Positions 49,490 to 58,354 of a DNA stretch of 64,000 bases are shown here, one piece after another; within the stretch, counting starts at the first letter, position 1; each line of letters opens with the position of its first letter. The notes below the pieces were generated by a model that saw only the letters and a program-made list of their open reading frames with translations, searched no databases and was not told the origin of the DNA. Origin of the DNA: Paramoeba atlantica (Eukaryota > Protista > Discosea); the NCBI GenBank assembly GCA_977017575.1, contig CDRNVI010000009.1:124001-188000 (forward strand), in the 5' to 3' direction. A program made the translations under genes and the position numbers.

Positions 49490-50661
49490 TATGTGTGGAC
49501 GAAACGTTCATCCAAAAAAGAAAGTACACCCATGGACAGAAGTGTGCCCCAGGCCTGGCAAATGCCATTTTTTTATCCGTTTTTTTCTCATTTTTGCAGC
49601 ATTCGAGAGATCTCTTTGCCCTAGCGAAGAGCTTTGCCCTTTTTTTCATAGGGACCCCCTGGTGCTCTGGTGGTGACCCCAAAGTAGACCAAAAACAAAA
49701 AATGGTACATTAGACATCTAGAAACAAATCACCCTTTCAATGAGAAAATGAGAAAAAAGGAAGAAGTATCAATATCCGCAATGCTCCCCATTGGTCTGAA
49801 TAACTATTTGCATACGTTTGGGAACAGATTTGATGGAATTCAACGCTTTCTGTCTATCATACCCCTGCCGGGTAAATGGGTAATTACCCACGTGGTGGTA
49901 AACGCGGGTAATTTACCCGGGTCATTGACCCATTTACCCGCTTTCACCCAGATTTACCAACCAACCATACGATCCCGTACTAGAATAAAGCTCGATGACT
50001 GTGCCAACTTTGCTGAGCAAGTTGTCGCTACAGAAACAGTATCTCAATCCATAGAAGGAAAAATCCGTCTTTCATTCGGTTTCCCCCCTTTCCTATCCCC
50101 TAAACCAAACAATTTTGTTTTTTTTTTTTTTATTTTTTTTTTTGATGACACTTGGAAAGGTGAATTTTTTTTTTTTTAAGTATGAATCGCGGCATTGCCT
50201 CTATATTTTGACCCATTAGACGAACCAAGTAGGTCCATTGGGGGGGGTATATGATTTTAAAACAAGCAATCAAATTAGCAATTTCATATTTTGGAGCCCA
50301 AAACCAGCAATTCGATCTCCCGTAAGTATAAGAACAATAAAAACAATAACAATAAAAATAAGCAATCTATGCCCAATCCATTCGCGCGTTCCGGACCGGG
50401 TCTTTCGACCTCTCCACGGCCTGACTTGTGAACCCTTCCCTTGTTATACAGGAGGGCGCAGGCGCGGGCCTGTGTCGACAGCGACACGGTCACGAAACAG
50501 GATGCTGGCCGACGGGGAGGAGATTCACTACCCGTGTACTACCTCACTTGGGGTACCTAGCCCTCGCGGGCTAGGCGTGAGTATAGACTCTGTCGACTCG
50601 GCCAGCACCCGTCCTGGATATTATGGCGTCTTCGTGCTGAAACTGGACTGTCAGTAGAGGC

Positions 50662-53600
50662 TTAAGCCTCTACCAAAGGATCCGCTGGGTCCTCTACGCG
50701 GATGCGCGAAACCATCATCCTGGCTTGAGAACGCATTAGCGTCACGTTCAGATCCGTTAGGAGATCGTTTCGCGCTTGGTCTCGTGAAAGGAGCCCTTTG
50801 GACGCATTCGCCCGTTGGGTTCCGATGTCCCGGAGTAACGCTAGCGCACTCTCGCTCCAGGAACCAAAGGATTCCACCACCATCGCTGTGAAGAGATGTC
50901 CTGCTTTTTCTGCTTCTTGTCGCTGTCGCGCCTTGGTCTCCGCGAAGTGCTCAGCAAAAGACCCCGGGGTCACCCAGCTAGCATTGTGGACTGAGTCCGA
51001 ATACTTTGTTTGCTGTGCGTGAGTGACCGCAAAATCTAGGACCATGCCTTGCGCTAAAGATCCTTTGGCGATGGAGGCCGTTGGCAGAAATACGTCCGCT
51101 GGTCTCGTGAGAGCCCCCCCAGGACCCCGATTTCCCAAACTCTTCTCTCTCTGTGGCGCCAGGAAGGCTCTGCTGCAGAACGATGTAAATTGTTGGGCCA
51201 GAGCGTTGTGCCGTGAGATGATACCATGGCCGTTCTTGCGGAGCAAAGCGTGCTCTCCATTCTTGAGCAAGGGAAGGGTGCACCCGTCAGCTGGGCAAGG
51301 CCGATCTTCGGGGAAGACGTCCATGCCTAGCCACCAGCGTGTTAGGGTACGAAACTCCGTGTGAGTGAAAGCGTAGCCTCTGGTCTTGGAGGGAGTTGCG
51401 AAAGCCCAGTTTCCGGCCCCTTTTCCGGACTGCGAGATCCATCGCGCCCGCGTTCTTGCGTCTGCCTTTGAATATGCCGTTTGAAATTCCCTATCCGAGA
51501 TAGCTTGGCTGAGATGTTTTTGCCTCGGGATGATCTTTTCCTGATCCGTCGAGACCGGGAGAAGGGAGTGATTGAGGGATAGTGCGAGTTTTCTTTTCGC
51601 TGGGCGGGAAAGGATGCTCCGATTTGCATGATATTCACCAGGCACGCTAGGTTTGGTAATGCGTCCAGTGTATGGATCAACCAGATCAGTCCCAACTTTG
51701 TCATTTATGTCATGTGCTGAGCTGGAAAATCCCTCAGCTTCTGTGGGGTCCCAGTTGTCCAAGCTAGCGGCGTGCGCGACGGAAGAAACGTAGGCTGCTG
51801 ACTGGTGGAGAATTGATGAGCGAAGTCCGAACCCGCCGTGGCGTTTTGGTCGTTGTATTTGGTCGCGAGCGGCGACGCCTAAGGGAGAAATTGCGTGCTC
51901 CACGGCCTGGACTAGATGAGAGTCAAGTTTTTGGCATAATTCTCCAAGGGCTTGGGGAGGAGTGGTGCGCAGTGCGTACACCATCTGACAAAACCCCGAA
52001 CATTGCCGTATTAGTGCGAGAGCTATTTGGGGATCTTCTAACACAGCAGTAGCTTCTAATGTTTCGCGGGCTGGTTCAATCGCGTGTGTCATGAGAAACT
52101 CCGCACAGTGTTCCGCAGAGCCTATTGGGCTTCCAAGAATGTCGAAGTTCCCGTCGTACCGTATTTTATCACTGGGGATGTCAGGAAAGAAAACGGATGT
52201 ATGAGCTGATGCTGGGGGGGTAATGATCTCGCACTTGGAGAGATTCAGGAAGAGTCCCCACTTCGGTCCTATCTCGTCGAGGACGTCTAGGGCTTTACGG
52301 ACTTCTTTGGGATCACCTACAAGCACACCGTCATCTAAATACCATAATTGTGTTCGTAGGTTAGAATTTGATGCAATTTCTTCTGTTACCTCTGCTAACA
52401 CCAAAGAGAAGAGGAGTGGGCCCAGAGGGTCTCCTTGTTGCACTCCTTCTGCCGAGGGGATAAAATCATCGCCGAATGTGAGACAGCTATGATTGGCATA
52501 ACACCATTCTACCCATGGGGATAGTTCAGGGAAATGCTTTCGTGTGAGGAAGATGAAGACGGGTCGGCTCACGTTATTAAAGGCGTTCCGAAGATCCACC
52601 TTACAGAACGTTATGTTCTCATTTTCTTCATTATTTCTCATTAGACGGCGACAAAGGTGTATCACTCTTTCCGCCCCAGCAGACGCTGCGACTCCGTATT
52701 GACGACGTCCAAAGAAGGATCCTGCTTTTTCTTTTATCGAAAGGCATACTGCCTTGCTCACCAGGCGTCTAAGGGTTTCCCCCGCAGCGATAGGCCGCAC
52801 GTCATCTTCCCCTTTTTCGAGTGCGCATAGCCGTGCCCCTGCAAAAAAAGGTTGCACTTCGTCTGGGGCTTTGCCAGCTAGAAGATGGTTTACGAAGGAA
52901 GTGAGCGTCGTAAGAGGATTCATATTCTGGTCGACGTGCTCTTGAAGCGCTGTTTGGAGGTGTTCAGGCCGGAGCCCCATAGTCCCAGCAGAGGATCCGC
53001 GACGGAAGGTATCTACTGCTTTTCTTACCTCGGATTCGTCCAGTTTTAAAGCTTCTTCTTCCAGGGGAGGTAGGGGGCACGAGATCGGATTACCATGGGG
53101 GCTGGGGTGTTTTTCCTGCAGCTTTAGCAGGGTTTCCTCGCTGTATGGTGCAAGTGGAGCTGCAGTAAGGGCAGCCATGCCTCGGGAAAATTCTCCTTGG
53201 CGAACCAGAATTTCAGCCCGTATTGCAGCCTTGTCTTCTTCACCCTCAATCTCATTATTCGGCACTTTTGAGCGCTTCCTGTCATGCTCCGAATTTGCTT
53301 GGGCCCATAGGGTGGTATATTGGCCTTGTATCCAAAGTTCCATTCGCTTTGAGATGTAGGAGGTATAGGACTTGTGAGCTTTACGGCCTCCTCGGTACGG
53401 GGCTGGTAGGACGCATTTCGGAAGCAAGGCAAGAAGGGTCCAGGCTCTCAGTGAGTTTTCGTTTACCGCGGTGGAGAGGGCTGCGGTAAAAATTCTGGTC
53501 CACAGATATCGACATCGGTGTGGGACATCCTTGCACGTGCTTATTTGGGTCGTGCAAACTTCCTCTAGGGACGGTAGACTATGCGTACCTTGCATATCGT

Positions 53601-54462
53601 ACATGGCTTCTCCGGACTCTGACAGCTGTGAATGCTGCTGTGGTTGTGAGGGCGGCTGCGAGGAGGGTGGTGTAGATTGCATTTTACAATGATTCAAATG
53701 AGAAGTTTTCTTGCTAATATCGTAATGACGACCGCATGCGTCGCAGAGAAATCGTCCTTCCTTTGTCCACCAGTCATTGGGTATGTTATTTCCGTGTCGG
53801 TAAGCAACGTGGTTGTAGTACGACTGCCATTGACCTCCATGGGCACGAGTTTTCCAAATACAGTTTTCTGCGGGGCACTCCCTTTGTGTCGGACGGTTTT
53901 GGGAAGATGGAAACGTGAGAACTGGTTCGCTCGTCGAAGGTGGGATTTCAAGGGAAGTTCCTTGTATTATTTGGCGTGGAGAGTTGTTTTCGGGGTTATG
54001 TTCCGTCGCTTCCCCTTTTCGAGGTGTAGCTGGTTCGCGCGCTTTTCGATGAGACTTTACGATTCCCCGATTCCCTTTGACGCTTGGGGGTGTGGAAGAT
54101 GGTTGGCATCGAGTAAACTTTTTAGTGATAGTGTTGCTATCAGATTGCATTTTTTGGTGTCCATGATGTAATCTGATGACTCGTGAGTGGTTTGTTTCCT
54201 CATCGCTACTATCTACCTGTCCCGTATCACGTGTCTGGTTCTCAGTTGAGATCAAGGCGGCGTTCATGTTCCATTCTTCCGGAATGTTCGCAGGAATAGG
54301 GGTCGTGTAGAGCAATTCGTTGTACGTACTCCGTTGCTTAATGAGATGTGCGTTTCCAGCAAACTGGTCCCAGGATCCTCTATTGTGTACTGCTTCCTTT
54401 TGTAAAAATGAATCGTCGTCCATCGGCGGAGGTGAGGCTTTGAGAAGATCGTCCTCAGACAT
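50662..54462 (-). CDS. 1266-aa polyprotein: LsmAD-like domain, zinc fingers, reverse transcriptase, restriction-like endonuclease
   Basis: RPIAAGE, KVDLRNAFN, GVQQGDPLGPLLFSL, WYLDDG (RT); RHNAL, RPADV, LDFAV (RLE); CPAENC..H...H and CDAC..H..C fingers; knuckle CPADGC..HALLRK has final Cys replaced by Arg (CGC). Confidence 0.93.
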   Translation of the reverse strand: MSEDDLLKASPPPMDDDSFLQKEAVHNRGSWDQFAGNAHLIKQRSTYNELLYTTPIPANIPEEWNMNAALISTENQTRDTGQVDSSDEETNHSRVIRLHHGHQKMQSDSNTITKKFTRCQPSSTPPSVKGNRGIVKSHRKAREPATPRKGEATEHNPENNSPRQIIQGTSLEIPPSTSEPVLTFPSSQNRPTQRECPAENCIWKTRAHGGQWQSYYNHVAYRHGNNIPNDWWTKEGRFLCDACGRHYDISKKTSHLNHCKMQSTPPSSQPPSQPQQHSQLSESGEAMYDMQGTHSLPSLEEVCTTQISTCKDVPHRCRYLWTRIFTAALSTAVNENSLRAWTLLALLPKCVLPAPYRGGRKAHKSYTSYISKRMELWIQGQYTTLWAQANSEHDRKRSKVPNNEIEGEEDKAAIRAEILVRQGEFSRGMAALTAAPLAPYSEETLLKLQEKHPSPHGNPISCPLPPLEEEALKLDESEVRKAVDTFRRGSSAGTMGLRPEHLQTALQEHVDQNMNPLTTLTSFVNHLLAGKAPDEVQPFFAGARLCALEKGEDDVRPIAAGETLRRLVSKAVCLSIKEKAGSFFGRRQYGVAASAGAERVIHLCRRLMRNNEENENITFCKVDLRNAFNNVSRPVFIFLTRKHFPELSPWVEWCYANHSCLTFGDDFIPSAEGVQQGDPLGPLLFSLVLAEVTEEIASNSNLRTQLWYLDDGVLVGDPKEVRKALDVLDEIGPKWGLFLNLSKCEIITPPASAHTSVFFPDIPSDKIRYDGNFDILGSPIGSAEHCAEFLMTHAIEPARETLEATAVLEDPQIALALIRQCSGFCQMVYALRTTPPQALGELCQKLDSHLVQAVEHAISPLGVAARDQIQRPKRHGGFGLRSSILHQSAAYVSSVAHAASLDNWDPTEAEGFSSSAHDINDKVGTDLVDPYTGRITKPSVPGEYHANRSILSRPAKRKLALSLNHSLLPVSTDQEKIIPRQKHLSQAISDREFQTAYSKADARTRARWISQSGKGAGNWAFATPSKTRGYAFTHTEFRTLTRWWLGMDVFPEDRPCPADGCTLPLLKNGEHALLRKNGHGIISRHNALAQQFTSFCSRAFLAPQREKSLGNRGPGGALTRPADVFLPTASIAKGSLAQGMVLDFAVTHAQQTKYSDSVHNASWVTPGSFAEHFAETKARQRQEAEKAGHLFTAMVVESFGSWSESALALLRDIGTQRANASKGLLSRDQARNDLLTDLNVTLMRSQARMMVSRIRVEDPADPLVEA

Positions 54463-54502
54463 GAGAAAGAACCGCGTACCTGGAAAAGATGAAATAAAGA
54501 AA

Positions 54503-54532
54503 CAACAAGGTACAGAAACTGTATCTTTATCG
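54503..54532 (-). other. Spliced-leader (mini-exon)-derived sequence
   Basis: CGATAAAGATACAGTTTCTGTACCTTGTTG; contains GATACAGTTTCTGTAC, the conserved kinetoplastid SL core, and ends in TTG like the 39-nt SL. Confidence 0.75.
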
Positions 54533-54668
54533 TTTTTTTATTTTTTTTTATTTTTTTCTTGACCTGGCGGGCTAATCCCCGCTTCATACAGTACTAATAC
54601 TATACTGTATAGTAGTCACTGTACTAAAATCAAATACAACTACTGCGTACAATCCACATAATGTTAAG

Positions 54669-56158
54669 TCAGTTATGTTCTGTATCTGACAATGATTCAA
54701 GCTCACTATCATTTTCCAGCGAATCAGAATCACCTTGAGTCATATATCCTAGCTTGTCGCAATTTCCTCGCACGAATATCTGGTGCGATACAACATCGGG
54801 AGTAAGGGAGGCCTGGCGTGAGCTATACATATATCCAAGCACGGAAAGCCAGGAGTCGCACTTGTTGACCAGGGGTGGCGTCCAAACGTAGTGTACGGCA
54901 GCTTCGTAAATCGCTGGGAACATTTCACACCCAGGACCACACCACCATTCGTACTCGTTGCTGAACTTAGACGGATCCCAACTGAAATCGAGGCATGCTA
55001 AGTATTTTTCCCACTCATCGGATGAAATACGAAAGATCGGCTGCTCGGCCGACGGACCGTCCGCATTTTTGTCAAAAACATTATTTGCTCGAGCTACCGA
55101 GATGGGGAGAAGACCACAAGGACGAGCGAACTGAACGATCCATCCGGGACGGAACCAGAGAACATCGTTCCAAAAGCGCATATTATGATTTTTTTTGTAG
55201 ACGAGTCTTGTGATAAAGAAGTGCTTCTCGCATTTTCATTTAAAGAAGTGCTTCTCGGGGAAATTTGGTCATATATGCGTTTGAGAGCTCCTTCGCAATT
55301 GTTACGTGCCACGTGATTCACAGAACTTCCGTCCGCGATCATGAATTTTAGCTTTAAAAGTCGGTGCTCACCAAGATTCGCCTGAAGAGTAAACACTAGT
55401 TGTTCGGCTACTGTTTTTCCATCAAAAGCACGATGACTAGGAGAATAAATGGGAGGTAAGACGTATTCTTCAGGGCCTACATATAAGACGGACAATAAAA
55501 TGTGCTCAGACTTTGCTCGGTCGATTCCTGCATCAACGGCAATTCCGTACACCATGTGTAAGTCAATGGCAGCGCAAAGCTTCTCCCAGACTTCGTGGGC
55601 TAAAATTTCACAGTGTTGATGCCACTTCTTCAAATTTGTTTCCGGAATAGCCTCTTTGATAACATTCGGTGGAAGGTCGGGGCGGAGATCCTCATACTTG
55701 CGAATCAGCCAAACGAATTTACTCGACGGAAGGTTTGTTAGGGTTTGTAGACATGGGAGCACCTTCCCAGCGAATCTTTGAACGGCCGCTCTCTGAATAA
55801 ACGAAACCTGCGCAGTCGCCAAGCGAGCTCGCTCCACGCCCTCACGACACTTGCGTACATGCTTATGATAGACGTTTTTAAATCGGCAATGAGATTGAAA
55901 CGTGCAACCCTCTGTCGTGCACACAAAGTGTACTTTTTGGTTAAGGGGGTCTGTGAGAACATCCGCGTGTTCATGCGGACAGTTTGGCGGGCAACGAGCC
56001 AAATTAAAGTGCCCAGACAAAGACTTCACCGTCATCTTGTGCCGCTCGTTTCGCTTTGATCGCTTTGGGTCCGGGGTCACTATCTCATCCTCAGAGCTTG
56101 ATTCAGATGAAACGATCGGTTCGGGCGTACTGACTGTCGATGATCTTCGTTTGGGCAT
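54669..56158 (-). pseudogene. hAT-like transposase, frameshifted and shortened
   Basis: Zn-finger-like CTTEGC..HKHVRKC, YGIAVDAG (D1), FMIADGSSVN (D2); C-terminal frame EWW...FPAIYEAA...TPPLVNKCDSWLS..R.SL..N matches the hAT dimerisation domain; frameshift near A8 run at ~55195. Confidence 0.75.
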
Positions 56159-57766
56159 GTAATAAATAGAAGATAAAAGTGCAACGCTATCAGCAAAGTA
56201 AATGATATTATGATTGAAGGAAAAAGAATCTGAGATTTTTCTGATAGATATACAAAAATAAAACATTCAAAATCATTTAAGGTACAACTTTTCAGTTCCT
56301 GTCATCGAGCGGGTAAACGTGGGTAAAGCGGGTAAATGGGTAATTTACCCGGGTAATTACCCATTTACCCGGCAGGGGTATGGTCTATGTGGGGCACGTT
56401 TTAGATCATTAAACGCCTTTTCTATGGCCTTTATCAGGGTTACAGAGTTGTGTGGCTTAAAACTACAAAGTTGTGTGGATTTATGCTGTTTGACTATCTC
56501 TGTTCGCTCCGAAATCGACAAAGCGATGTTTCGTTTATGATTAGTACGAGGCGGGGTCCTCATGAAGAAAAAACAGGGAGAAAAAAATAATATACTAGAA
56601 AAATTGACTGTGTTCCAAAAAAATGGGCAATAAAACCATGTTTTTTGGACCCAGGGGGTACCAGGGGGTCCCTATGAAGCAAAGGCGGCAAAGCTCTTCG
56701 CTAGGGCAACGAGATCTCTCGAATGCTGCAAAATTGAGAAAAAACGGATAAAAAAATTGACATTTGCCAGGCCGGGGGCACACTTCTGTCCATGGGTGTA
56801 TAATCGCGGTAAGCCTGCACGAACAGAGTCCTTCTGGGCAGTTTCTGTGACGGGTGTTGAAAGGGATGGAAAGTGCCAAGAAACAGTGTGGTTCAAAGTG
56901 AAGAATCGGAAAACTAACACTTTGTGTAATATTGTGAGGCAATGCACACTAGATTCCAAACGAACAGTTGTGTATACCGATTGTCTATCAAGTTAACGCC
57001 CATTGTCTGCTACTCGCGATCATTGAAAGGTGAACCACTGATCCAAGATATCGGTTCAAGACAAAAGAAGGTGTGCACAATAATAACGCAGAGTCGGCCC
57101 ATTCTTCTATAAAAAAGATGATAAGACGACAGGGGCGACTGCCCAAAAACGTGATAAGTGCAAGTAGAGTTCTTTCCGTGTATACTTTATGGTTTAAGAA
57201 GACAACCTGGCAAGAACGTTTACAAGCCTTACTGAAAGCGTTCAAGGTTGTACGAAATTTGCCTCAAGTAGTTGACGTTTTATTCGACTCGTTCGATTCC
57301 ACCTGCGAGGGAATAAGTGATGAAGAAGATGTTAGCGAAGTCGCATATCCCGAAGATCGGGATATGAATGAAACACCATGTGAAGCGGAGTCCGTTGAAA
57401 TTGACATAAATATGCCAACCGACTAAGACTGGGTGTTTATTGAAAGTTTGATACAGAATTGATACATCCTTCAAGGGGATTCATACATTATATTTTGCTT
57501 TCACTATATTTACTTTCAATAGAAGTTAACAACCTGCAATATAAATTAACATCCTGTTATATAAATTGACATCCTGCAATGTACAGTTAACGGCCTGCAA
57601 TATAAGTAAGTTGACATCCTGCAATGTAAGTTAACGGCCTGCAATATACAGTAGTTTGAAAGTAGTTTGAACCCCATTTTTCAACGGGACAAATACTTCG
57701 AGAAAATGCTGTGGGAATAAAGACTCACCCAGCTTTTCAAGGATCTGTGCGACACCGCTCTGAAGC

Positions 57767-58354
57767 ATGAAGAAAGTGAAGTGTCGCGCTTCAATCGTAT
57801 GGCCGTTGATAAAACTTAGGTTGAGAAACGTAAATATCATCGCGGTAAGCGTGTTCGCAAGGAAGTTCGTTACTGCGACAGAAATCCTACGTGACGGTAC
57901 ATCCGGGAGGACCGTATGGAAGCTCGTCCAGAAGCGTGACCGACCTACTTTGACTGCATTCGTCGAGAAACATACAGGGAGTAGGTTGGACTGTTGGAAG
58001 GGTTATGCCGGTCTCTCTGAAATATGTGAACAACACCATGTAAACCATCAAGTCGAATTCGTATCGGAGGAGGGGTATCACACTAACAACGGAGAAGGCA
58101 TGTACAGTATAGTGAAGGACTGGGTTAAGAAGCAGCACCGTAATTTTGGTATTAATTCTACGCATTGTCAGGAGCGCGTGGCTCTGCAATGTGTGAAACT
58201 GGGTCGAACTCACCGCCACGGTCAAGCTGCTCGAGGAATTCGATTGGCGAATATTATCGCATGTGTCGCACAGTACGGCGAAGGGGACCCCCCCAACTTT
58301 CGGAGGCTCTGGACCGCATGGGCCCCCGCGCGGACGAGTCGGTCAGTGGGGTAG
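57767..58354 (+). pseudogene. Merlin/IS1595-like transposase fragment (second lineage)
   Basis: LDCWKGYAGL...HVNHQVEFVSEEGYHTNNGEG. Confidence 0.78.

Follow-up and report, generated by a model that had tools for sequence, protein, structure and literature searches.

Known CRE elements occupy a fixed site in spliced leader (SL) RNA genes and have been described with zinc fingers, a reverse transcriptase (RT) and an endonuclease only (PMC12278014). CRE1/CRE2, SLACS and CZAR share with the element described here a single open reading frame (ORF), N-terminal zinc fingers, an RT, a C-terminal restriction-like endonuclease and poly(A). A kinetoplastid-type host and an association with the spliced-leader sequence are further points of likeness to the CRE clade. 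The element differs from that clade in that the SL is its own 5' end, found at ~890 dispersed A-rich sites, and in that it carries an LsmAD domain. Human LINE-1 uses a polyadenylated mRNA as template, and poly(A)-tail mRNP factors including PABPC1 aid formation of its RNP. LINE-1 recruits these factors via ORF1p/ORF2p without an ataxin-2 domain and has an APE-type endonuclease, unlike the element here.

LsmAD is a hallmark of ataxin-2, a disease-relevant mRNA regulator. The isolated domain folds poorly and shows no RNA binding; next to the LSm domain, LsmAD influences how that domain folds and binds RNA (PMC11898529). The contacts of ataxin-2 are distributed over several regions: PABP binds via PAM2, LSM12 has its partner site on the LSm domain (PMC11166328), and Mkt1 contacts Pbp1 elsewhere, at aa 491-549 (PMC12345631). 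DDX6 binding has been attributed to the LSm/LSmAD region (PMC12898128), and LsmAD has been proposed as a docking site for further RNA-binding proteins (PMC7946432). LsmAD has also been reported to be neither necessary nor sufficient for mRNA targeting. Ataxin-2 "chimerisms" that combine LsmAD with unrelated domains are whole ataxin-2 orthologues plus extras and were attributed to read-through (PMC12898128). They share with the element the pairing of LsmAD with foreign domains, but none has a reverse transcriptase or a transposon, and that 2026 survey of ataxin-2 chimeric architectures mentions neither (0 mentions, PMC12898128).

The window, by which we mean the whole 64,000-nucleotide stretch of DNA analysed, contains on its minus strand an uninterrupted reading frame of 1266 aa. 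This frame lies within a ~4.37-kb retrotransposon copy (50165..54534) that is flanked on either side by A-rich tracts. The features of this copy are as follows.

50165..54534, minus strand: complete retrotransposon copy, ~4.37 kb, from SL-derived 5' end to 3' poly(A).
54503..54534, minus strand: spliced-leader-derived leader (AACGATAAAGATACAGTTTCTGTACCTTGTTG), read from the sequence; a few 5' bases are missing here.
50662..54462, minus strand: ORF, in the order LsmAD, linker, two zinc fingers, RT, CCHC, restriction-like endonuclease.
54172..54426, minus strand: putative captured PBP1 segment, residues 13-97, from hhalign, Pfam, conserved columns and dN/dS.
53680..53877, minus strand: two zinc-finger-like motifs, residues 196-261 (C196...C261), with a Cys/His pattern kept in 11 families.
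52174..52815, minus strand: reverse transcriptase, residues 550-763, YLDD at 708 (Pfam RVT_1, E 1.1e-18, 68 bits).
51013..51297, minus strand: CCHC knuckle (1056-1075) and restriction-like endonuclease motifs, residues 1056-1150, from the 11-family alignment.
50165..50661, minus strand: 3' UTR with a terminal 13-nt poly(A), read directly; the same end sequence is found upstream of other copies.

The original prediction, made from this stretch alone, was that a CRE-like retrotransposon ORF begins with an Ataxin-2/PBP1 LsmAD-like domain at 54172-54372. The position is correct, since residue 31 of the ORF begins at 54372 and residue 97 finishes at 54172. Likewise, the 11-family alignment bears out the claim that the LsmAD-like segment, the zinc fingers, the RT and the endonuclease motifs all share one frame. 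The zinc-finger-like motifs at residues 196-261 gave no Pfam match. The endonuclease assignment is a reading of motifs, made without a profile model: RHN, PAD and D lie at residues 1084, 1121 and 1143, and CPxxxC...H...C, RHN, RPAD/RPGD and LDFAVTH are conserved across the 11 aligned families. A single ORF with an RT, then a CCHC and PD..D-type endonuclease motifs, together with a 3' poly(A), is the arrangement of the restriction-like-endonuclease type of non-LTR retrotransposon, to which R2, NeSL, CRE and HERO belong. The first ATG is 40 nt downstream of the SL and there is no ATG earlier, so the LsmAD-like segment would be translated first.

We found that the N-terminus of the ORF consists of an acidic lead-in (MDDDSFLQKE) followed by an LsmAD-like stretch (H26, G29, W31-D-Q-F ... 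LYTTPIP ... DEETNHSRVIR), and that the motif on which the prediction had been based, WDQF..N..STYNELLYTTPIP ... DEETNHSRVIR, is present. When the isolated N-terminus of the window copy was compared with Pfam LsmAD (PF06741), residues 44-95 matched at E 5e-4 with 20.9 bits, under the cut-off of 25. Taken by itself, this match is suggestive and borderline. We then aligned 16 diverse family N-termini (alignment A1), which are 27-62% identical to the window copy and represent a partial sample of the families. LsmAD was matched at E<=0.01 in 14 of the 16, the best Pfam match reaching 1.6e-8. Aligned by hhalign with the PBP1 encoded in the same genome (the host PBP1), A1 gave a probability of 99.2%, E 1.1e-19 and 41% identity over 90 columns; the alignment pairs A1 columns 14-103 with host PBP1 residues 117-217 and takes in the acidic lead-in that precedes the Pfam domain. 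In a language-model atlas search the 114 N-terminal residues of the window copy retrieved LsmAD clusters exclusively (score 0.92, 194/256 shared features). By family profile, hhalign and language-model search, therefore, the LsmAD-like N-terminus is a genuine LsmAD homologue, as had been predicted.

Conservation within the segment follows the ataxin-2 pattern. W31, Q33, F34, N37, S45, L51, Y52, T54, E88 and E89 are invariant in the 16 families and Y47, T53 and V95 nearly so, and these positions are likewise conserved in 44 ataxin-2 domains. The element domain resembles the LsmAD of ataxin-2, Pbp1 and trypanosome PBP1 in WDQF-x2-N ... S-T-Y/F-x-E-x-L-Y-T-T ... followed by an acidic run and [YFH]-S-x-V. 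It differs in its central NxH..EERG (ERG) motif, which is TPDTG in most element families, and in standing alone at the N-terminus of an RT, without an LSm (SM-ATX) domain, PAM2 or the disordered tail. Consistent with this, Pfam detected neither an SM-ATX domain nor PAM2 in the 1266-aa ORF, where LsmAD starts ~25 residues after Met1. An AlphaFold2 model of the N-terminus contained short helices only (pLDDT 65, pTM 0.22, low confidence), and an atlas fold search with this model found no match; such a model would agree with a flexible docking segment and with the poor folding reported for LsmAD. Residues 2-34 also resembled a tachylectin-2 blade, with a summed E of 1.7e-8 yet an i-E-value >2 for each single match. 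We regard this likeness as chance, as it is gone with the family profile (E 0.17) and residues 2-34 are poorly conserved.

The genome (45.7 Mb, 248 contigs) was searched by tblastn with the 114-aa N-terminus, which gave at least 150 genomic matches at 44-100% identity. Among the matches listed, 68 lie inside open frames at least 1,100 aa long. For the subfamily of the window copy, 9 of 15 places among the listed matches carry frames of at least 1,100 aa, at 96-100% identity; these long, near-identical frames point to recent activity. A scan of the genome with PF06741 gave 151 matches, of which the best two (53 bits) are a host gene on C44/C66. Next come dozens of element copies in 1,300-1,420-aa frames that score 26-37 bits, above the cut-off. 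The domain is thus present in many subfamilies and is not a one-off, which is what the proposed genome-wide check for further fused copies was meant to decide. The LsmAD-RT fusion is family-wide. A tandem 2.28-kb array with short LsmAD frames was considered as a host gene and rejected, being a composite of element fragments.

The age of the fusion can be bracketed from the RT. RT relatives that do not belong to the group (30-42% identity) are without LsmAD, which places the capture after that split, and RT identity between families that share the fusion falls to ~50%, which places it before the family radiation. Hits from ENA and from representative libraries were 98-100% identical to genomic copies or dS 0.02 apart in those tested. 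A search of sequencing runs found the sequence only in contig-level, DNA-type records from one study and in no RNA run. All copies found come from the window's genome or a near-identical one, so on the sequences compared the fusion is documented in one host lineage.

We next consider selection on the domain, using pairwise Nei-Gojobori estimates between subfamilies. For the LsmAD domain dN/dS was 0.036-0.131, at a dS of 0.7-4 that is often saturated. The linker after LsmAD gave 0.12-0.34, and the region from the zinc fingers to the endonuclease gave 0.05-0.09. In the best-behaved pair, L037/L039 (dS 0.7), dN/dS was 0.105 in the domain and 0.093 in the remainder. The LsmAD domain is under purifying selection at the protein level, of a strength like that of the enzyme core, and the combination of high dS with low dN rules out constraint on the nucleic acid alone.

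The original prediction also held that the element lineage had captured a host domain. The host gene on C44/C66 encodes SM-ATX, LsmAD and a PAM2-like LNPNARAFTP, and hence is a PBP1/ataxin-2 orthologue. When the A1 profile was run against 1.84 billion representative proteins, 793 hits were obtained at E<=1e-3. Per domain, element fragments scored 90-177 bits, and the best non-element hits were P0038, a metagenomic PBP1-like protein (88.7 bits), together with host PBP1 (83.4 bits). Every other ataxin-2 among the best 150 of the 793 hits scored <=60 bits, ~25 bits behind P0038 and host PBP1. In a maximum likelihood tree of 79 domains the elements formed one clade (100/96), and the elements, host PBP1 and P0038 formed a clade (100/99) separate from 54 other LsmADs, with host PBP1 as sister of the elements at 80/71; the outgroups, sampled among the top-scoring matches to the element profile, include no identified trypanosomatid PBP1. 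Derived states common to the elements and this PBP1 clade are HL[IV] for LFGV, YTT[PS]IP, and SFLxEE..H..G before WDQF. A word-indexed search with host PBP1 residues 1-230 gave no match.

Scores, clade and derived states agree with the predicted capture in placing the element LsmAD in the host PBP1 lineage. A second host LsmAD gene bears on how closely the donor can be named. This 360-aa gene (L071 1393..2475, minus strand, on C48 and C90) has no SL close by, adjoins a NIF-phosphatase-like ORF and is placed inside or beside the element clade on a long branch. AU tests that included this gene did not reject monophyly of the elements (p 0.35), and they did not reject a grouping of the gene with the PBP1s (p 0.30). 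The safe statement, from these comparisons, is that the element domain derives from the host lineage's own LsmAD genes, with PBP1 as the likeliest donor. Proteins with a double LsmAD, RRM and PDZ (P0032 group) were also considered as donor and rejected: their high whole-protein scores are sums over 2-3 domains, they reach <=52 bits per domain and lie elsewhere in the tree, and the window's genome has no orthologue.

The SL 23-mer is present at 891 dispersed genomic sites, vs 0 for a reversed control. In 11 of 11 aligned copies it is invariant as the 5' end and similarity starts there; immediately upstream is a variable poly(A) stretch, and the flanks beyond it are unrelated and often consist of the 3' tail of a different copy. 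With the SL at the 5' end and a 3' poly(A), the template looks like a mature trans-spliced, polyadenylated mRNA. Insertion looks like it goes into A-rich sites and not into SL genes; in the 11 copies and 891 SL sites we did not find the site-specific insertion into SL RNA genes that characterizes the CRE clade. None of the best 120 RT relatives has a trypanosomatid name, the named ones being from the sponge Ephydatia and the others metagenomic. Since the SL is the element's own 5' end and trypanosomatid CRE, SLACS and CZAR are absent from these 120 relatives, the label "CRE-like" in the original prediction is unproven. We therefore file the element by its sequence features as an endonuclease-type (R2-group) non-LTR element, with CRE membership unproven.

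Taken together, our data make it very likely that a large group of restriction-like-endonuclease non-LTR elements carries an N-terminal LsmAD captured from the PBP1 of its host lineage, probably as a protein-docking module. As isolated LsmAD is poorly folded and not RNA-binding, protein docking is the most likely activity of such a module. Which partner it would meet is constrained by what was taken. It had been suggested that the domain plugs the element RNP into the PBP1/MKT1/LSM12/PABP machinery; the element has no LSm domain, no Mkt1-binding region and no PAM2. With only LsmAD taken, a link to MKT1, LSM12 or PABP is left without a domain basis, and this part of the proposal is not supported. 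By analogy with ataxin-2, our best guess for the docking target is DHH1/DDX6, or another LsmAD partner. The WDQF-x2-N-x3-F start of LsmAD presumably resembles the FDF-type DDX6-binding motifs of EDC3 and LSM14, a likeness that we use as a lead only.

A mechanism that would fit these results is as follows. The host is a euglenozoan with a kinetoplastid-type spliced leader, and the window copy belongs to a large group of single-ORF non-LTR retrotransposons, recently active and of the restriction-like-endonuclease type. An ancestor of the group probably copied ~100 residues of the host-lineage ataxin-2/PBP1 onto the N-terminus of its own protein, the copied piece being LsmAD with its acidic lead-in, minus the LSm domain, the PAM2 motif and the disordered tail. 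LsmAD would then link new element protein, along with its RNA, to an mRNP component of the host that binds the PBP1 LsmAD; DHH1/DDX6 is the best candidate. Docking to this partner could aid the assembly of RNPs or make the polyadenylated template more stable or better translated, and target-primed reverse transcription at A-rich sites would follow.

Two metagenomic RT/endonuclease relatives, P0177 and P0178, have a C-terminal MLLE (PABC) domain of PABP. They are ~41% identical to the element over the RT-endonuclease region and, like it, bear a module of the PABP-PBP1 poly(A) mRNP. They differ in that MLLE, which binds PAM2 motifs, is at the opposite end of the protein and LsmAD is lacking. The MLLE relatives and the LsmAD elements together suggest repeated borrowing from the poly(A) mRNP. 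A broader proposal, which we put forward tentatively and think somewhat doubtful, is that LsmAD, and MLLE in sister lineages, gives the elements autonomous docking to the poly(A)-tail mRNP (the DHH1/PABP-PBP1 axis) and in this way secures cis-preference for a template that is trans-spliced and polyadenylated.

The element LsmAD might instead act as a decoy that titrates a PBP1 partner and so blunts a host mRNA-repression or granule pathway restraining the element. A segment that shares its origin and its conserved contact motifs with host PBP1 could do this, and since the other PBP1 parts are absent it could bind a partner without passing on PBP1 output. However, every one of the 68 listed frames that reach 1,100 aa has LsmAD joined in cis to the enzyme, we found no expressed version of the domain by itself (the short frames in tandem are arrays of fragments), and the MLLE-carrying relatives look like recruiters. 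Decoys also require abundant protein, whereas retrotransposon ORF proteins are typically scarce. We consider a decoy unlikely.

A role within the element protein is less likely still. Here LsmAD would have lost partner binding and would serve as a folding or regulatory arm for the zinc fingers or the RT, much as in ataxin-2 LsmAD helps its LSm neighbour to fold and to bind RNA (PMC11898529). The replacement of ERG by TPDTG in most families shows that the ancestral surface has partly changed, which would suit such a role. However, the positions most conserved in the elements (W, Q, F, N, S, L-Y-T, EE) are those of all ataxin-2 LsmADs, which argues for a retained ancestral contact, and ~100 poorly conserved residues (dN/dS up to 0.34) separate LsmAD from the zinc fingers. 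The last possibility, a chance motif resemblance or the single template-switch chimera raised in the original prediction, could appeal to the sub-threshold Pfam score of the window copy and to the spurious-looking tachylectin-2 match at residues 2-34, but is refuted for the chimera and has a negligible probability overall, given the hhalign E of 1e-19, at least 150 in-frame copies in many subfamilies, purifying selection, the supported clade with host PBP1 and the loss of the tachylectin-2 signal with the family profile.

Docking by a captured LsmAD thus stays our preferred reading. Transposons are known to capture host domains, and the few accessory domains acquired by non-LTR elements now include one from a host mRNP. 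As far as checked, LsmAD as a captured module, maintained stand-alone, is new; in agreement with the prediction, we found no LsmAD-RT fusion described in the literature searched. A domain freed from ataxin-2 and strongly selected across dozens of diverged families argues for a self-sufficient activity. The conserved element positions indicate which LsmAD residues matter, and the construct is usable as a partner bait. If the broader proposal of autonomous docking to the poly(A)-tail mRNP is true, evolution would have supplied, in the 60-plus diverged copies that are intact, a mutational scan of LsmAD function and of its contact surface.

One feature sets the window copy apart from the rest of its group. 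Residue 1075 (51238-51240) is Arg in this copy and is the fourth CCHC Cys in the 10 other aligned families. Because Arg1075 replaces a conserved zinc-ligand Cys, the window copy may be inactive.

Besides the element in the window, a retrotransposon whose ORF begins with an LsmAD domain, we found further LsmAD-coding loci in the genome of the window (G000):

L071 1393..2475 (G000:C48, ~75.5-76.5 kb), minus strand: second host LsmAD gene, 360 aa, C-terminal LsmAD (26.4 bits)
L023 (G000:C163:167722-170829): third LsmAD-coding locus, interrupted by an intron-like, AT-rich insert
L050 191-5182 (G000:C17:55100-60800), plus strand: 1664-aa open frame with an LsmAD-type start followed by APE endonuclease, RT and RNase H

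The 360-aa protein of L071 is identical to the protein P0051, and a further copy of its gene is found on contig C90 at ~85 kb. No spliced-leader (SL) sequence was found near the L071 gene, which is adjoined by a NIF-phosphatase-like ORF. In the tree the LsmAD of L071 formed a long branch nested among the elements, and AU tests did not separate a donor, a domesticated element fragment and an independent PBP1 derivative. The LsmAD sequence of L023 is closer to canonical (DEEDLYSGV), and the contig carrying it may come from another organism in the sample.

The N-terminal 293 aa of the L050 frame share 98.6% identity with the LsmAD-type element L051, and the remainder has an ingi/L1Tc-like architecture. 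This composite, observed in a single copy, represents either a nested insertion in frame by chance or a recombinant of two retrotransposon classes.

Fragments of LsmAD-type elements also form an array:

G000:C22:137-156 kb and C21:0-12 kb (loci L059-L066): tandem array with a repeat period of 2.28 kb

In every unit, the 5' 430 bp from one family, covering SL and LsmAD, are fused to the final 112 codons and the 3' UTR from the window's subfamily. The array was considered as a gene and rejected; its units are an amplified composite of element fragments.

Other borrowed domains were observed in RT/endonuclease relatives from other metagenomes (P0177, P0178, P0183, P0193 and P0191; 38-41% identity):

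P0177 1557-1620: C-terminal PABP MLLE domain
P0178 1079-1143: C-terminal PABP MLLE domain

Among these relatives an N-terminal Prim-Pol domain and ubiquitin occur as well. Domain capture seems to be a tendency of this RT lineage.

In the window element, residue 1075 (51238-51240, minus strand) is Arg, a position occupied in all 10 other aligned families by the fourth Cys of the CCHC knuckle that precedes the endonuclease. With its ORF intact, this copy may nevertheless be integration-dead.

An alignment of 11 element copies around the 5' end (A2) revealed poly(A) or A-rich tracts immediately preceding the copies; often such a tract is the poly(A) tail of a further copy arranged head to tail. 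Similar tracts flank the copy in the window on both sides:

54535-54560: A-rich tract
50110-50164: A-rich tract

These flanks would fit a target-site duplication that is long and A-rich. The surroundings are a transposon-rich stretch: the adjacent ORFs of the window (54669-56266, minus strand; 57073-58354, plus strand) resemble transposase genes, with a hAT-like pair adjoining the element and an ISXO2/IS1595-like fragment lying farther from it.
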